DNA of 63,826 bases, counting the filler, from Dugesia japonica (lineage: Eukaryota): the NCBI GenBank assembly GCA_001938525.1. It is 6 parts of 6 records of this genome, joined end to end, with 100 filler letters (N's around TTAATTAATTAA, not from the genome) between each part and the next. Parts side by side here need not be neighbours in the genome. Positions count along the whole stretch, not along the records: positions 54,322 to 63,826 come from MQRL01622553.1; 5 more parts are not named here. One strand, written 5' to 3'. Within the stretch, counting starts at the first letter, position 1. Every line of letters begins with the position of its first letter. The position numbers and the translations under genes were made by a program. Shown one piece after another: positions 54,322 to 63,826 of this stretch. The notes beneath the pieces are model-generated. The model was not told the origin of the DNA. It was given only the letters and a program-made list of their open reading frames with translations, and did no database searches.

Positions 54322-55422
54322 TAACAAATCTATTTTAATAATTATAAAATAATTTTTGTAAATAATTTTTTAATGAAATATAAAACTAACATCAATAAAT
54401 ATTTATCAACATATTTCTAAATTAAAATAGTTAAAATCATAAAACTTTTAATATAATTCGTAATCTACAATTCTTTGCATTTTTACAAGGTGGCCCAAAA
54501 CATATGGACGGAATTGTATTTTATTCAATAAAATTTATCAATAGACTTTTCTTAGTCTAAAAATATTAGGTTGTCCCTAAAGTTCTGTTACAAATAAGTA
54601 AAATAGAAAAAGAATATGTTATTGAATTTATAAACAATAATAAGAATTTAAAGGAAAGAAATGTTCTTCAATAGTATTTCTTTAGGTATTCTATAGACAA
54701 GTTTTATGATACTAGAAACAACGACAATTTCCAGGCAAGTCAAATTTTAAACCAATTTTTTTCTACTGAAATTCGTCGATCAATGAAATGCAAATTTTGT
54801 AACCCATGAGAATTCCAAAGCACCTTGTCAAAACGTTAATAGTGCACTGTTAACGTATCTATATAGTAACAATTAAAATGCATTAATAGAATACGAAAAA
54901 TAGACTTTATTCAATTTATTAATGCTAATAAAGTCATATTCGTCAATACTCAATCATCAAATCAATGTGATGCATTATATAGCGAATAAATAAATAATAT
55001 CAAAAATATTTTGGTTAAAAATAAATGTTTCAAGTCTTTACATATTTTATTTTATTTATTTAATAGATCTTTAAAAATTAACTTTATGTTTATAATTAAT
55101 TAATAGTAATATAATACTAAAGTAATTTATTTACAATTAATTTCACCAAAACATTTAATAATTTTATAAATATAAACTAACATAGACATACACAATCATC
55201 ATACGAATACAGATAAAATTTTATTAATAAATTTTATAGAATAATTATTTAAATTTTATAACACTTATGAATGTAGGTTTATTAGATTTTTCAATTCATT
55301 GATTTTATTGCGTATTAATTATAAAGAATAGTATTTATTTGTAAAAAATTTACGGTAATTGCATTATTAAATGCTATTAAATAAATTTATTCTATTCTTT
55401 ATTCTTTATCTTCTTATTGCAG

Positions 55423-55515
55423 TAAAAGAACCACAGAAAATATGTCATTCATCAACTTCATTTAAAAACCATGATCAAACTTGTAGCAGTTTCAATGACA
55501 TTGCTGTGAAAACAG
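55423..55515 (+). CDS. Isolated putative 93-nt phase 1-1 exon
   Basis: Long polypyrimidine tract ttctttattctttatcttcttattgcag|...ACAG|gttcat; open frame KEPQKICHSSTSFKNHDQTCSSFNDIAVKT. Confidence 0.35.
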
Positions 55516-58438
55516 GTTCATTATAGATTTATTTTTAAATAAATTATTGAAATATTTTATTTATTTTAATTATATAAAAAATGTTTTTGACTCAAATGGT
55601 ATTTAATTTTAGGAATTTTGAATATTAATTATGATAACTTATTTTATATTTATTAATAAAATATATAATTGTCATCATTCGTTATTTAGATAATAAGAAT
55701 AACTAATTAAGAAAAATTATGAAATATTCTTTAATATAAAAACATGAAATTAGTTTAGTCAAAAAATATCGGAAAACAATAATTATAAAATTAATTATTA
55801 ATAAATATTATTATTAAAATTAATTATTATTACAAATTATTAGTATTGTGACAATTTTAAAACAACTTGTAAACCTTAGTGATTATTTAATTATCAATTT
55901 AAACAAATTTATTAGAATGCCATTCTATCAATTTTATTGTTCTTAATAATTTGATTAAAAAAAGGCGAATTGGTTATTATTGAAATTAGTGCTTATTGAT
56001 TTTTTGGATATGAACAGTAATTATTTCATGAAAAGAAATAAATAATTATTATTTAAACAAATCATAAAACTTATTAATATAAATATTTTCATGATGTATT
56101 AACCCTTAACGTTAAACACGTGTTATCAAAATTATTATTATTGACAGAAACCAGTGAAAAAAGATTGATTTAATTTTTATTTTCACTTAAATCTCTTGAT
56201 TATTGCTAGACTAAAAAAAATATTTCACTAGTACTAATCATAAATAATCAATACCTAAATATTTGGGTTAAAATTGCGCAGTTATTTCATCTCAAGTCTT
56301 CCGTCATCATTTATCAATGTGATGCATTTATCACAAATTATTGTAATCAGTTGNAATAACAGCTTGTTATTGATTTTTCTGCAAATATATTTATTACGTA
56401 TTTTATTAAAGTTGATTAAATAATCTTCATAGAAATAATTACAATTCATTTTACAAATTCAGTAAAAAATTTTAATTTAATTAATTAATCAATTATCACT
56501 TCTTTTCAATTTAATAAACTTGTTCACCCCCTATAGTTATAAATTTTTTTCAGGTAGACCTTTTTATTCATGAAAATATAATTGAAAATATTTAAAAACT
56601 TTTATTTTTTGGAATTTTGTCTAGTACATACAAATGGACTTGCGTATTATTCCCCCTGACTTTTATCATTTTTCAAATCATTCGAAGTTAAATTTTACTT
56701 CGATTAAGAATATCACAGTTAAAGGTTGAGATTACATATACACATCAAATTAAATGAAAATAACCTTAAATTCTCCGCGAGGAATATTAGCATTATATTA
56801 TTCCCCGAGATAGTTTCATATTAGTTGCTCTCCTGGACAATTTGCGCTTTTTTATATTTTTATTTTAATCAAAAAAAGGCAAAAGAGTTTATAGAATTTC
56901 TAGAAAAACAAGAATTTATAAATTTCATTGATTTTTAAAATAACCTTATTTTAAAGGATAATAAAGTGATTGCGTGTAACTGTGTCACTTATAAATTATA
57001 TATTACATCAAATGCTATAAAAAAAGTGTAAAAAAGAAAATTTGGCGCATGTCCCATCATAATATTTATCATTTAGGGGCTTCAACCACAGACTTTTACT
57101 AGTTTAAGTTGATTAATGTGAACAATTGACTGAATTATTTGGCTGGATCGAGTGAAGAATTGAAAATTCGAGAGTAAAATTATGATAAACCCATAGAAAA
57201 TAAAATATTTAGATACACTCCCCGAGAATATTAACATTTGAAATTGATAAATGAAACATTTGAGTGATTAGATCATGAAATATATGAATAATAAAGCTGA
57301 CTATTTGATATAAGTGTATATTAAATGGATAGATTAAGATGGTTTAAATAGGTTATGTATGCATTAAGTGAATAAAGTATGTGACGGGACTAAAATGTTT
57401 GTTGTAAAAATCATATGAGAAAAACAATGAAAAAAATTTTAAAAATTACATGAACTTTTATAAAACTAGTCAGAATTTACATAAAGTTTTCCAAAAAAAA
57501 ATGTTTTTAAAGATTTTTGACTAAATTTTCATTATATGTTAGCCGGAAAAACGTTTCATCCTTGAAGGAGGGTGATATGGTGTGCTACTATCTGTTTACT
57601 ATCCAATGTTAATAATCCAATGCATTTTTCCAACTGCAACGTATAAACAATATACAAATTAATATACGTGTTAATAACGGGAAATTAATTAAATTTGCAA
57701 AAGATTCAAAAACTCATTCATTATCTTACCTTGTATTAAAACAGTATGTATACGGTTAGCTGCGAACAATAGGAAGATTTTATCTTCTTAATCTTAAACT
57801 CATTGGTTCATTTGGTATGCAACAGTTCAGAATGTACTNGCTGGTAATGTAAAATATTACCAAGAGTAAAATTCAATACATTTACTGAGCTTGGTAACGT
57901 AGTATCTTCTCTATCTAGTGAAGTAACCGATATGATCCCAAAAGTATAGCAAATTACATAACAATTGAAATAAGTAATATAATAACAAATCATCCCAAAA
58001 CCAAACTAACTAATAGAAAACGTAAATAATCAAGCTCATTGCGTATAATAAATAAATGAGAGGATATGAAACAATATTCAAGAAATATTTTCGGTATTTT
58101 ATTATGTAGTTTTTATAGCAAATCTCATCAAGCCGTTGTTGAAATTGATTCATTTGAAGACTCGTTTCGAATGAATTCAATTTCTTAATCGTAAAGTTAT
58201 TTTTTATAAAATTATCTTAAACAGCATATTTTTATTTGAATGATACTTTATTGTATATTAAAATGAAGGTAGTTGATAAGCAAGACAAGGTTTTGGTTGA
58301 CACTCATGATGAGGTTCATATGTTGTATTTCTTCAATTAATAATGTCAAAATTGATGAAGAAAATGGAAATTATATTCAAAAACCATTGATTGGAACCAT
58401 AATAGGGGTAGTAAGAATATTTGTCTTACTGCAATGAG

Positions 58439-58740
58439 CTATGTAGCAGAAGTAGATAGATAAAGTCTAATAAAGCGTATAAACCATTGTCTTTCTGTGT
58501 TTACAAGTCTTCCTACATCTCTAAAGTTATCAATAATTGATTTGATCGTCACATAGTGCTCAGCATAGTACTTCACAGCATTCAACCAACTTGTCCATTT
58601 TGTGACAACAGGCTGAGATGGCATTCCAATACCTATAAACAGTTCATGTTTTGTGAAGTTCTTTGTTTTAGGAGCTGTTAAGGTTGCAATCAAGCAGTCC
58701 ACATATTGTAAAGTGACTTAATTCTCAAAAGCACTGTAAC
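58439..58740 (-). pseudogene. hAT-like transposase relic
   Basis: MPSQPVVTKWTSWLNAVKYYAEHY, resembling the PPxPVxTRWGTWL motif. Confidence 0.7.
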
Positions 58741-59029
58741 AAAGAATTTCATATTTAGAAAATTACATTTAAAACGAGTATATAGATGCTATGATGCAAA
58801 ACATGGAATCAATAGACTTATAATCAGATGACGGATATTACTGCTATCTCAGAAGTTCAATCTAACGTATTGATGACGAAATGTTAAGGATTTTAACTTT
58901 TACATTTTAAAAACCCCGTACAGACGTGAAATGTTCATATCTTAGATAATATTTTGATACCTGTCGATAGAGAATTAAAAGCTACCTATTTATTGTTTAA
59001 AGAAGTGATATCGAAAAATGCATGCTTTA

Positions 59030-59900
59030 TTATAAAATCAAAAACAAAGAACTTTTAAATCTTTTAAAAATTGCTTTTGGTATTATTTCAGTATCTAAGA
59101 ATTACCAATGATAATTAATGAGAGTATATATTAAAAACAATTGAGTGTATATAAATAAAAGTTGTTGAGTTTTTATCGTATAAAGTAGATTAATTTGATA
59201 AGTTTTTGAAGATTCAATTGACTTTATTGACAAAAATTGCCCTCGAAATGACTATTGAAATTTTAAAATTGTTTTGCAATCTTATAAAATCATAAAATTG
59301 TTTAGTTATAAGTCTAAATTACCAATTCAATTGTGTACTGATCTTGTTTACAAATACGAATGTAATTGGAATGGATACATTGGAGAGACTTCCGGTCATC
59401 TCTGTACAAGAATTCAAGAATATTGTCGAATTGGTAGTGGAAGTAATATTGCTGAACATAATATTAATTGAAAATCAGTTATNAGTATAAATAATTTTAA
59501 AATTTTGTGCAAAACCTTTAAAGATTATTGAGAGAGAGAGTTGAGTTGTGTGTGAAACATTGTTGATTAGATCAATTGGTTCAAAAATTACTGTTCAAAC
59601 TGGTCTTTCTAAATCTAAATTGAATGTTTTTATTTGATTTGATTTATTGAAGAGATTGCATAATTGTTAACATAATCAAAATTTTATATATATTTCTTTT
59701 TAAAAAATAAAAAATAAAAAAAAAGAAAGAAATATTGTTTCAATAAAGAATTTTCAAAAAAGAATTAAATTATTGTATCAGAAGATGACGTTGTAGTTAC
59801 AGTTATGCTGTCGAAACATGTTATACAGAAATATATATTAAAATGGCGTTTCAAAGTTTGATTAGAAAAAGGGCTAAATAAATACTTTTTAAATACCGTT
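59030..59900 (+). mobile_element. Penelope-like element 3' part (GIY-YIG)
   Basis: DLVYKYECNWNGYIGETSGHLCTRIQEY...NIAEH...NNFKIL. Confidence 0.88.
59774..59827 (+). ncRNA. Degenerate minimal type I hammerhead-ribozyme-like motif
   Basis: TGTAT-CAGAAGA-TGAC...GTC-GAA-ACATGT-T-ATACA: stem I TGTAT/ATACA, stem II GAC/GTC, palindromic stem III ACATGT. Core is CAGAAGA rather than CUGANGA. Confidence 0.5.
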
Positions 59901-60113
59901 ACAATATTTTATTTAATAATTTCACAGAGTTTTACACTTTCACAAAATAAAAATAATCAGAGAACATCAAAATAAATTTGTAACATTTATTAATTATAAT
60001 TAATTATAAATTCAATGATTTATTTAATTTATTAAGATTATTGTTTTACAATTGCAATTATTGCGAGAATAATTGTTGGACTTAACCATTGATCGTTTTA
60101 TAGAATTCATTTT

Positions 60114-60235
60114 ATATAAAAGCTTAGATCAAAATTTAGGTTTTTAATTATTGATATTGGATAACAAATCGATATTTCGATTTGTTATCCAATATCAATA
60201 ATTAAAAACCTAAATTTTGATCTAAGCTTTTATAT
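60114..60235. repeat. Perfect 59-bp inverted repeat with a 4-nt loop, derived from the palindromic MITE
   Basis: 60114-60172 is the exact reverse complement of 60177-60235; loop TATT. The MITE left end starts at ~60045. Confidence 0.92.
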
Positions 60236-60464
60236 TATATTAAGATTATGGGTTGTATTGATTTTTTAAGTATATTAAGCCTATTCGGCCAGACTAAAAA
60301 AATCATTGTCAATTTGTTTTATTATTTTGGATCTATGAAGTGAATTTCTTAGATTTGAACATTATATTATAAAACCATAAAAACTGAATATCAGTTCTTA
60401 CAGAATATATCGAATAATAATTTTTTATTAATCGAAAATTTAGATAATTTTTATTTTTATCCAG

Positions 60465-62335
60465 TTTATCAGGCGATGAAAATGGGAAAACGTATTGTTA
60501 CATTAATAACAAAAATCGCTATTGGCATTGATGGTGAAAACTATGACTTAGAAAGAACTGGAAATGGTGAATTTTTTAGAGAATAATTTTATTTTATTTA
60601 TATAATTGTAGAAATCGAAAGACTATTTATTTCGTTGTGTAAAGAAAAGGCTTTTTACAAATACGGAAAAACAAATGATTTAGAAAGAATTGGAAATAGT
60701 TGATTTGTTAAAGAATAATTTTATTTTATTTATATAATTTTAGAAATAGAAATTCTAATTAATTTGTTAGATAAGGAAATCGTTCTTGATATCAATGGAG
60801 AAAAATATGATTTAAAAAGAATTGCAGAGGGTTGATTTATTATAGAATAATTCTATTTGATTAATGTAATTATAGAAATGGAAATACTNNNNNNNNNNNN
60901 NNNNNNNNNNNNNNNNNNNNNNGACTTTAGTGAAGAAAAATATAATTTAGAAATAATTCGTGATGGTGGATTTATAATAGAATAATTTTATTTTATTAAT
61001 TTAATTATAGAAATGGAAAAACTATTTAATTCATTAATTAATGAAATCACTCTTGGCATTAATGAAGAAACAGATGATTTTAAAAGAAACGGAAATGGTG
61101 GATTTATAATGGAATAATTTTATTTATTGAATATAATTATAGAAATGAAAAGACTATTTATTTCGGTTTTTAATGACATCACTATTTACATCGATGGAAA
61201 AATAGATTCTTTAGAGAAAATCGAAGATGGTGAATTTATTTTAGAATTATTTTATTTTTTAATTTTCATTATAGAAAATGAAAAACTAGATTATATATTA
61301 AAAAAGAAAAATATTTATCTAGACATTGATGAAGAAAGATTTGATTTAGAAAGAATTGAAAATGGTGAACTTGTTTTAGAATTATTTTATTTTATTATTA
61401 TAATTATAGAAATAAGAAGATTATTTATTTCGTTAGTAAAGAAAGATATTTCTTTATACATTGATGGAGAAAAATATGACTTAAAAAGAATTGAAAATGG
61501 TGGATTTATTATAGAATTATTCTATTTTATTAATGTCATTATAGAAATAAAAAGACTATATAACCACCTAAATCAAGTAGCTCCCGATATTGATGGTGAA
61601 AAGAATGATTTTGAAATAAAAGAAAATGGTAAATTTATTATAGAATAATTCAATTTTATTAATATAATTATAGAAATGGAAAAACTATTTATTTTGTTAA
61701 TAAAAGATATCGTTTCTTACATCGTTAACGAAATAGATGATTTAGAAAGAATTGGATACAGTGGATTTATTACAGAATTATTTTATTTTATTAATTTATA
61801 ATTATAGAAATGGAAAGTCTACTTAATTCCGCATCAAAGAAAAGTATCTTCTTAGACATTGATGGAGAAAAATATAACTTTGAAAGAATTGGAAATGGTG
61901 AATTTATTTTGGAATGATTTGTCTTTTATTAATATAATTATAGAAATAGAAAATCTATATAATTCGGTAACAAAAAAAAGTATTTCCATAGAAATTGATG
62001 GGATAAAATATAATTTAGAAAAAATTGGAAATGGTGAATATATTTTAGAATAATTTTATTATATTTATACAATTGTAGAAATAGAGAGACTATATTTTTC
62101 GTTAGTGAAGTCAATTTTTTTTGAAATCCTTAGAAGAAAATATTCTGAACGAGACATTAAATATAGTAAATTTTACAAATCTCTTTATTGTATTCATTGA
62201 ATATTAGCTTTGGAAAATACGTTTAATTTGTCTGAAAAAAAGCAATTTAAATATAAAGGGGGAAATGTCCGAAATTCTACAAAGCGTGTTGTAAAAAACG
62301 AATTTTCTACAAAAAAGAAAACTGGGAGAATTTAA
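60465..62335 (+). CDS. Tandem symmetric-exon array gene encoding a repeat protein of unknown family (~424 aa from ATG 60476)
   Basis: Exons 60465-60566, 60612-60698, 60744-60830, 60876-60965, 61011-61097, 61143-61229, 61275-61364, 61410-61499, 61545-61628, 61674-61760, 61808-61897, 61944-62033, 62079-62165, 62208-62335 (TAA). All 13 introns are GT-AG, phase 1, 42-47 nt. No premature stop in any exon. Confidence 0.85.
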
Positions 62336-63826
62336 GAAAAATGGGTTGTGAATTGCTTCACGAAATACTAAATTGTGATTTTCATTAATTAAGAATTTTT
62401 ATGGAAGTATCTTAATAAATTACGAAACGCGTTTAATTATTTAAAAATAAAAATATATTAATTTCGAAAAAAATTTAAATAAAAAACACAATAATTTATA
62501 CACATGTAAGCAGCAATTTAAAACAACAAATAAATATATAATGATGATAAACATGCTTTTCATAATATTTATAATTTCACTCATTTTTCATTAATAAAAA
62601 TATTTGATTTATTCAAACAAATGTCTTTAGTTATTTTAATTATGATTATCGTAAATAGGTAGTCGTATTGTTTCGGACAATACGATTTGATCTTTTGTTT
62701 TATTGTATGACAATTATTTGGTGGAAAAATTGAATTATAAAACGATTTTCTTATAATGAATTAATTTTAGTGATCAATTTAAAATTGCTCTTAGGGCGGG
62801 ACAGTATTTCATGCGTGATGTTTACGTGTTACATTGGGGATACCTACGTTTGATAATTGTTTTAATGAATGTAGTTTTTGATTTAGCTTTAATCAATTTT
62901 TTCTTTGTTGGTTTGTTTATTGGGTTTATTTGTTGTATTATCCATTAGGCTTAAATAGTTTATCGCTATTCCATTGAAGAAATAACAAAACAATTTAAGT
63001 AATTTAACTACATTTTTACATATGTATTAAAAATGTGTTAAATTGATATTTCTTGCTTATTGTTATCATACAAATATGATATTAGTTTCGGCATGATAGT
63101 GTCAATTGCGGTCCAAATTCTATGATTGGATTTATCAACCCAGTCATATCATTGCTATTGGTCTACTAAGTNNNNNNNNNNNNNNNNNNNNNNNNNNNNN
63201 NNNNNNNNNNNNNNNNNNNNNNNNNNNNNNNNNNNNNNNNNNNNNNNNNNNNNNNNNNNNNNNNNNGAATGAAACGTTATTCTGGAAATATATTCAACAG
63301 AAAGTTTAATATTAGACAAAAATCAATTCGGTTATAAGTCGACAATAATCTGTAAATAAGGAAAAAAACAAATAAAACAACCATTCTCATTCTAGGTTTT
63401 ACGACATCACTTTCAAATTCATATATGGATGTCCACAATCTTAATTATCTTCTTGATAATGTGATAAGATATATGTTTATTTGTAATATTTTTTAATATT
63501 TTGCTTTATTCTTTATTTTCACTTTTTAGTGAATTTATCTATTGACTCATGCTCTTTATTTTGACTTCCTTTTCTTTTACAGGTTTTTGCAGAAATATAT
63601 TTAATTCGTTTCAAAATATATTTAAAATAATAATCTTGTAAAATGTTCAAAATCTAAAAAAATCAAATATTCCAATATTCATATACATCAAACAAATTTT
63701 ACATATATTTTGAAACTTTTAAAATATATTTGGAAAACTATTGAATATAGTTTTGCAAAAACCTGTAATAACTTTGTTAATTTCGCAATTTCTCTTCGTT
63801 CGTTTCCACATCCAACATTTTGCTTC

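Follow-up and report, generated by a model that had tools for sequence, protein, structure and literature searches.

Does the tandem array of a unit of about 132 bp at positions 60480-62165 of a 63,826-nt stretch of Dugesia japonica DNA (assembly GCA_001938525.1; the whole stretch is called the window below) represent satellite DNA, or is it the body of a protein-coding gene? The original prediction, which was made from the sequence, had resolved the interval 60465-62335 into exon-intron cassettes and proposed a protein of an unrecognised repeat family with combinable exons. Our analysis indicates that the array very probably belongs to a lineage-restricted and expressed gene on the + strand, which encodes a predicted secreted protein of 476 residues with thirteen acidic repeats and a basic tail. 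We regard the gene model itself as firm. The gene belongs to a known class, that of tandem exon duplication, of which it is an orphan member.

The cassette array and its spliced RNA

Each of the 13 tandem copies at 60480-62165 consists of one exon of 84-90 nt and one intron that begins with GT and ends with TAG. Tandem Repeats Finder (TRF) delimited the 132-bp array at 60537-62104 with 69% matches, and nhmmer with a profile of the unit recovered 13 copies (60480-62145, E values of 1e-29 to 3e-3). Neither search found a further copy elsewhere in this piece of the window, which is very AT-rich (GC 18-30%). Twelve of the short introns are homologous cassette introns, ten of them with 45 nt and the remaining two with 47 and 46 nt, and a thirteenth short intron at 62166-62207 has 42 nt and also GT..TAG ends. 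The repeat exons measure 87, 87, 90, 87, 87, 90, 90, 84, 87, 90, 90 and 87 nt and are all phase 1-1. Their length differences, that is the indels between repeats, are multiples of 3 only, while frame-shifting lengths (47 and 46 nt) are confined to introns. An in-frame stop is present in 10 of the 13 short introns; the spliced exon frame is open and the other two exon frames hold 34 and 41 stops. Our re-parsing and recomputation agree in all these respects with the cassettes first described. Neighbouring exons are homologous and in register, as in other genes with tandemly duplicated exons, and in this gene the same is true of the introns. Moreover, all internal exons (84-102 nt) are multiples of 3 and all 14 introns of the gene are of phase 1, so that the copy number can change without a frameshift. 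Read without splicing, 61127-61648 (+) forms an open reading frame (ORF) of 173 codons that runs through the three stop-free 45-nt introns (61230-61274, 61365-61409 and 61500-61544). A gene caller of the prokaryotic style would report it as a false gene with hydrophobic inserts of 15 residues between the true repeats.

The absence of spliced reads at the predicted junctions had been named beforehand as grounds for giving up the gene. We looked at RNA and found the junctions present. Two contigs, X5 (study P2, 1481 nt) and X8 (study P4, 1521 nt), lie on 60462-62431 with 0 differences and lack the short introns, and both extend upstream of 60462 with letters that are not found locally. Of the 13 predicted junctions, 11 correspond to listed joints in these contigs and the other two follow from the span of a joint and from record lengths. 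The contig pieces on either side of 61365-61409 are separated by 173 record letters, which equals 90+83 and means that this intron was removed too. The second case lies next to a run of 34 N at 60889-60922, inside the fourth repeat exon, which both contigs cross with a joint from 60830 to 60923. Between 60698 and 61274 the contigs have 350 letters, equal to 87+90+87+86, which puts the exon that holds the N run at 90 nt in the mRNA (13+34+43). The N run is therefore of true length and conceals no additional cassette, and the sequence on its two sides joins up in frame. Further N letters occur as a run of 95 downstream of the gene (63172-63266) and singly in intron 1 at 56354, 57839 and 59483.

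Raw reads gave a second view of the same junctions. In X22, which is on record as oligo-dT RNA-seq, reads joined 60698/60744 (n = 6), 61627/61673 (n = 11), 61096/61142 (n = 2) and 61896/61943 (n = 1). Together with the removal of 45 nt at 60966-61010 and of 47 nt at 61761-61807, both with allelic letters at the exon ends, this amounts to six junctions. The first mates of these reads fell nearly all on the - strand, so the RNA is that of the + strand. One further joint in X22, from 60566 to 60676 (6 reads), leads from the end of exon 2 into the middle of exon 3 and skips 109 letters, with letters of unknown identity in between. Either an allelic stretch was too different to be aligned there or the junction is aberrant; as a true deletion it would shift the frame.

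The contigs X5 and X8 showed no depth in the flanking non-coding bin 60328-60431 and in this respect behave as cDNA. Each of the two assemblies held a single full-length contig with every exon included. All 14 introns are spliced out, and X5 and X8 carry a single full-length mRNA from which no exon is missing. In 19 runs of seven studies, each run contained 0.44 of the sampled 31-mers of 60923-62500, and the DNA-like run X15 contained 1.00. If only words internal to exons were present a share of 0.47 would be expected, from which 0.44 does not depart beyond the sampling error (156 words). In 17 further runs, which come from other studies, the word share agrees with this complete form. A ciliate-type code with TAA as a sense codon, under which the array would be an unspliced repeat of 44 codons, was rejected, as the RNA lacks the introns and the transcript stops 96 nt past the TAA.

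It had also been proposed that the array works as a combinatorial isoform generator. In such a model, subsets of the 12-13 repeat exons would be skipped under regulation, or the three stop-free introns kept in the mRNA, to yield a population of variant secreted proteins as in schistosome micro-exon genes. The layout is favourable to such a device, with internal exons that are all multiples of 3, introns that are all of phase 1 and three stop-free 45-nt introns whose retention would leave the frame intact and which permit a read-through ORF of 173 aa. The protein evolves fast, like interface proteins, and the unusual conservation of the introns described below could mirror splicing control. The part of the proposal that stood is that any internal exon can be skipped in frame. 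However, among the joints listed for the raw X22 reads (2% threshold, depth 1-18x) none linked a donor with an acceptor beyond the neighbouring one, X5 and X8 had one contig per junction, which held every exon, and the word share of 0.44 in the 19 runs fits the complete form. Because X22 is only 1-18x deep and contigs drop rare variants, minor isoforms may still exist. With no skipping joint seen, combinatorial splicing is unsupported rather than refuted, and we consider it quite improbable.

Selection on the reading frame and probable constraint on the introns

If the array encodes a protein, its frame should bear the mark of selection. Pairwise identity between cassettes was 65-81% and independent of their distance in the array; without a neighbour effect, the substitutions can be treated as largely independent. 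The observed differences of each exon from the consensus (216 in total over 11 exons) were placed at random, keeping the base composition of the exons. A single exon remained stop-free in 13-35% of these random trials, and for all eleven exons the probability was about 4e-8, from which we conclude that selection keeps the frame open. This result bears on the view that the stretch is AT-rich satellite DNA without coding function, or a pseudogene in decay, which merely looks like a gene and is incidentally transcribed. The degenerate 132-bp array reported by TRF (69% matches), the lack of a homologue in any library searched and an omega near 1 would all be in keeping with such an origin. Yet satellites and pseudogenes account neither for RNA of several studies in which each unit is spliced precisely at GT..AG, with a polyadenylation signal at the contig end, nor for a stop-free frame of this probability where the alternative frames carry 34 and 41 stops. 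Exon indels in threes, conserved hydrophobic columns and a signal-peptide exon joined in frame point the same way, and a non-coding origin appears scarcely credible to us.

The gene reading being preferred, we asked how strongly the residues are held. Between repeats pS was 0.40 and pN 0.34 (omega about 0.8). Comparison of the X22 strain with the window listed 31 exon positions that differ, of which 27 are nonsynonymous and 4 synonymous, a ratio that rejects an omega of 0.3 or less (p = 3e-4) and is compatible with neutrality (p = 0.29). The conserved positions of the repeat are the hydrophobic L6, L10, I15, I19, L/F26 and I29 and a D-G turn. The frame and a hydrophobic skeleton are preserved by selection, and the other residues change almost freely. 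Over the exons at 60478-61953 X22 showed about 3% differences from the window, many of them fixed and some mixed (e.g. 61438, 61473 and 61484), which indicates that X22 is a divergent strain with polymorphism at this gene within the sample.

The introns behaved differently. They are 82% identical to each other and the exons 68%, and divergence per site was 0.18 in introns and 0.33 in exons (permutation p = 0.00035); in columns with an A/T consensus only, the values were 0.19 and 0.29. The tiny introns are thus held more tightly than the exons. As the repeats have also diverged more at synonymous sites (pS 0.40) than the introns have overall (0.18), purifying selection on the introns is the simplest explanation, rather than accelerated evolution of the protein. 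A near-minimal intron of 45 nt would have almost no free positions, since the donor, a branch region (TTAAT), a T-rich tract and the acceptor would fill it and its length would be held as well. In a self-similar array every donor must, in addition, pair with the next acceptor, which may add to the constraint.

A contrary interpretation is that gene conversion first homogenised the copies and that positive diversifying selection, acting on a secreted antigen or effector, then made the exons variable, so that conserved introns would not reflect constraint on them. The identities of 82% and 68% would be expected under it, as would the 27 nonsynonymous and 4 synonymous strain differences, which correspond to an omega of about 1.5. 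A like pattern is reported for the genes of conotoxins and snake venom PLA2, in which introns are more conserved than exons. Our gene shares with these venom and toxin genes a predicted secreted product and introns that are less diverged than the coding sequence. In contrast to them, its synonymous sites have likewise diverged more than its introns and omega does not exceed 1, which points to intron constraint. Selection on amino acids does not explain a pS of 0.40 against 0.18 in introns or an omega of about 0.8 between repeats; the ratio of 27:4 is indistinguishable from neutrality (p = 0.29), and the neighbour effect expected from conversion is lacking. We therefore judge diversifying selection unlikely, though it keeps some weight.

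Constraint on the introns, which we prefer, has a more far-reaching variant. The introns might be held so tightly because they serve as instructions for joining the cassettes, with low-level skipping or retention that produces a family of variant repeat proteins. This we hold to be improbable. If true, it would be a system of variation resembling that of micro-exon genes, but built by duplication of cassettes and with a repeat fold that has not yet been described.

The gene from start codon to polyadenylation signal

Where does the gene begin? The ATG at 60476 had been considered as a possible start, but it is internal to the coding sequence (CDS), and the same codon is ATC in the X22 strain. 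A 30-letter consensus of the upstream ends of the X5 and X8 contigs maps uniquely to 55483-55512, where it is followed by CAG|GT. The exon found there (55371-55515) has an ATG with an in-frame TAA just before it and is spliced in frame, at phase 1, onto exon 2 at 60465. The start codon and the signal-peptide exon are located 4.9 kb upstream of the array. The CDS runs in frame over 1431 nt from the ATG at 55371 to the TAA ending at 62335, in 15 exons separated by 14 introns. Its product of 476 residues comprises a putative signal peptide, thirteen repeats of 29-30 residues and a basic tail of 42 residues.

All features of the model lie on the + strand. A TATAAA at 55320-55325, 51 nt upstream of the ATG, is a candidate TATA box by its sequence. 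Exon 1 (55371-55515), defined by contig mapping and its ORF, encodes the ATG, a hydrophobic signal peptide predicted by hydropathy and two Cys. Intron 1 (55516-60464, 4949 nt, GT..CAG, phase 1) separates it from the array and contains repeat debris and a foldback element. The array opens with exon 2 (60465-60566, 102 nt), which carries repeat 1 with a divergent N-terminal half, and continues over intron 2 (60567-60611, 45 nt, an in-frame stop, joint in X5 and X8) into exon 3 (60612-60698, 87 nt, repeat 2). Intron 3 (60699-60743, 45 nt) has two in-frame stops and is supported by the joint in X5 and X8 as well as by the 6 raw X22 reads. It is followed by exon 4 (60744-60830, 87 nt, repeat 3) and by intron 4 (60831-60875, 45 nt, two in-frame stops), which lies inside the contig joint across the N run. 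Exon 5 (60876-60965, 90 nt, repeat 4) holds this N run, its length being deduced from the contig coordinates. Intron 5 (60966-61010, 45 nt, an in-frame stop) was seen in contig joints and in X22 reads with allelic letters at the exon end. Exon 6 (61011-61097, 87 nt, repeat 5) and exon 7 (61143-61229, 87 nt, repeat 6) flank intron 6 (61098-61142, 45 nt, an in-frame stop; contig joints and 2 X22 reads).

The three stop-free introns come next. Introns 7 (61230-61274) and 9 (61500-61544), both of 45 nt, were seen as contig joints, and for intron 8 (61365-61409, 45 nt) between them removal was deduced from record lengths. Exon 8 (61275-61364, 90 nt, repeat 7; contig pieces with 0 differences) and exon 9 (61410-61499, 90 nt, repeat 8) lie within this region, and exon 10 (61545-61628, 84 nt, repeat 9) closes it. 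Intron 10 (61629-61673, 45 nt, an in-frame stop) is backed by contig joints and 11 X22 reads. Exon 11 (61674-61760, 87 nt, repeat 10), exon 12 (61808-61897, 90 nt, repeat 11) and exon 13 (61944-62033, 90 nt, repeat 12) were all found as contig pieces. The two introns between them would shift the frame if retained: intron 11 (61761-61807, 47 nt) rests on contig joints and 11 X22 reads with one allelic letter, and intron 12 (61898-61943, 46 nt) on contig joints and 1 X22 read. Intron 13 (62034-62078, 45 nt, an in-frame stop; contig joints) leads to exon 14 (62079-62165, 87 nt), in which repeat 13 has a divergent C-terminal half. The last intron, intron 14 (62166-62207, 42 nt, GT..TAG, an in-frame stop), was likewise seen in contig joints and could not be aligned to the cassette introns. 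Exon 15 (62208-62431) encodes the basic C-terminal tail, with the TAA at 62333-62335 and a 3' UTR that reaches to the contig end at 62431. An AATAAA polyadenylation signal (62414-62419) is located 12 nt before this end.

Intron 1 holds sequences of other kinds. The foldback at 60106-60243 is made of two arms of 67 nt that are 96% complementary and 4 nt apart, and looks like a miniature inverted-repeat transposable element or a hairpin element; an Rfam search with it gave only a weak, sub-threshold match to a miRNA precursor (MIR1319, 34.6 bits against a gathering threshold of 116.6). RNA depth is huge over 60016-60223, with a word depth of about 8500 in X8 and 6300 in X5 and about 150x on both strands in X22. 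The stretch occurs with many different flanking sequences and several polymorphic positions, and appears to be a dispersed repeat within many transcripts, outside the mRNA of this gene. Two stop-free stretches in the intron, of 92 codons at 58442-58717 (-) and of 70 codons at 59259-59468 (+), look as if they might be debris of a hAT-like transposase and of a GIY-YIG (Penelope-like) element, respectively; Pfam and a homology search returned no match for either.

An orphan repeat protein in a known gene class

What kind of protein does the gene encode? Residues 1-18 form a short charged stretch, a hydrophobic core of 13 residues and a polar region, as judged from hydropathy. Signal peptides have a short n-region, a hydrophobic core of 7-15 residues and a polar c-region, and with such a layout secretion is likely. 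Together the repeats form an acidic body (pI 4.8, net charge about -21). The tail of 42 residues has a pI of 10.6 and a net charge of about +8, and is the basic C-terminal tail that had been predicted. It could act as a nuclear-localisation-like or polyanion-binding segment. In Pfam, the tail region at 62210-62332 (+) matched Ribosomal_S30 below the threshold (20 bits, where the cutoff is 27; E 8e-4), most likely an effect of its Lys/Arg composition. For each repeat an amphipathic helix plus a beta-hairpin had been proposed. Within the repeats the hydrophobic moment showed a strand-like alternation I-x-L/F-x-I, then D-G-E-K, then helical periodicity into the next repeat. This periodicity agrees with strand-turn-helix units such as those stacked in solenoids. 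AlphaFold modelled one isolated repeat of 30 residues (12 rows) as a single helix with a pLDDT of 80, which is uninformative on the array.

The repeat family was not recognised at first sight, and searches of Pfam, of the PDB and of proteins on a scale of billions likewise left it without a homologue. Pfam gave only sub-threshold noise for exon 1, one repeat, the tail and the 173-aa read-through ORF (e.g. TcaA_3rd_4th, E 0.47). A profile of the repeat found no homologue among 1.84 billion representative proteins beyond a chance match to P0001, in which a motif of 11 residues occurs in five identical repeats. The PDB profile match 4p99 was rejected as chance too, since a motif of 10 residues was counted four times in identical tandem domains. 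The read-through ORF had no match in 5.8 billion clusters (word-indexed, proteins of 95-303 aa), a scan of JGI metagenomes yielded no relative, and all matches by ESM Atlas features were below 0.9. A full-text search of the literature brought up nothing specific, either on the motifs of the repeat or on genes of similar architecture.

By its architecture the gene is less isolated. With other tandem exon-duplication genes it shares homologous adjacent exons of phase 1-1 and lengths that are multiples of 3, a phase-1 intron after the signal peptide and an intron that was copied along with its exon. Exons of phase 1-1 are typical of extracellular modules. The symmetry of exon phases is a subject of PMC3632108. 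It differs from these genes in its tiny unit of 132 bp, in near-minimal introns of nearly uniform length that are more conserved than the exons, and in a repeat that matches no described family. The ribonuclease-inhibitor gene, in which the repeats are laid out exon by exon, offers a comparison at the protein level. Like the leucine-rich repeats (LRRs) of the ribonuclease-inhibitor type (28-29 residues), our repeat of 29-30 residues has a strand-like stretch followed by an amphipathic helix. However, Pfam gave no LRR match even at E <= 10 and the motif LxxLxLxxN/C is absent from the consensus of the repeat alignment, a conserved D-G turn standing in its place.

Micro-exons measure 6-36 nt. In schistosome micro-exon genes (MEGs), most of the coding region is made of very small symmetrical exons, and alternative splicing creates pools of similar secreted proteins (PMC4350168). 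The present gene resembles the MEGs in its signal-peptide exon, symmetric internal exons, predicted secreted product and fast protein evolution. Its coding sequence does not lie mostly in very small exons, the internal ones measuring 84-102 nt. Repeat exons of 84-90 nt are not micro-exons, they are tandem paralogues with introns of 45 nt between them, there is no sequence similarity to MEGs, and no skipping isoforms were seen, given the depth of X22 (1-18x) and contigs that drop rare forms.

Some points weigh against the gene as we describe it. The label of X5 and X8 as RNA is a guess, their status as cDNA being argued from the absence of intron words and of flank words. The cDNA contigs start at about 55378, which leaves the transcription start and the initial 7 nt of the CDS outside them. 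Hydropathy is the sole basis for the signal peptide, conservation of the introns may in part stem from low-complexity A/T sequence, and the statement that no homologue was found covers the 29-position repeat profile, single exons and the 173-aa ORF. The biological role, finally, is something we infer.

With these points taken into account, an expressed, constitutively spliced gene for a secreted repeat protein is still the account that we favour. It would have grown by repeated tandem duplication of a unit of 132 bp that consists of one phase-1/phase-1 exon and one 45-nt intron. The protein may form an extracellular folded array, with strand-turn-helix units stacked as an elongated scaffold, and might use its acidic body and basic tail to bind a partner at a fast-evolving interface, for example another organism, a mate or an extracellular matrix.

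A stretch that repeat finders may mask as a degenerate AT-rich satellite can thus be a well-expressed gene. The locus provides a clean natural case of gene growth by duplication of a whole exon together with a minimal intron, and it carries the unusual signature of introns that are constrained more tightly than neighbouring synonymous sites. The array is therefore a convenient substrate for asking which share of a near-minimal intron is functional and how the spliceosome keeps its register in a self-similar array. In many organisms, fast-evolving secreted repeat proteins mediate interactions with hosts, mates or surfaces, and the protein described here may play a part of this kind in Dugesia japonica.

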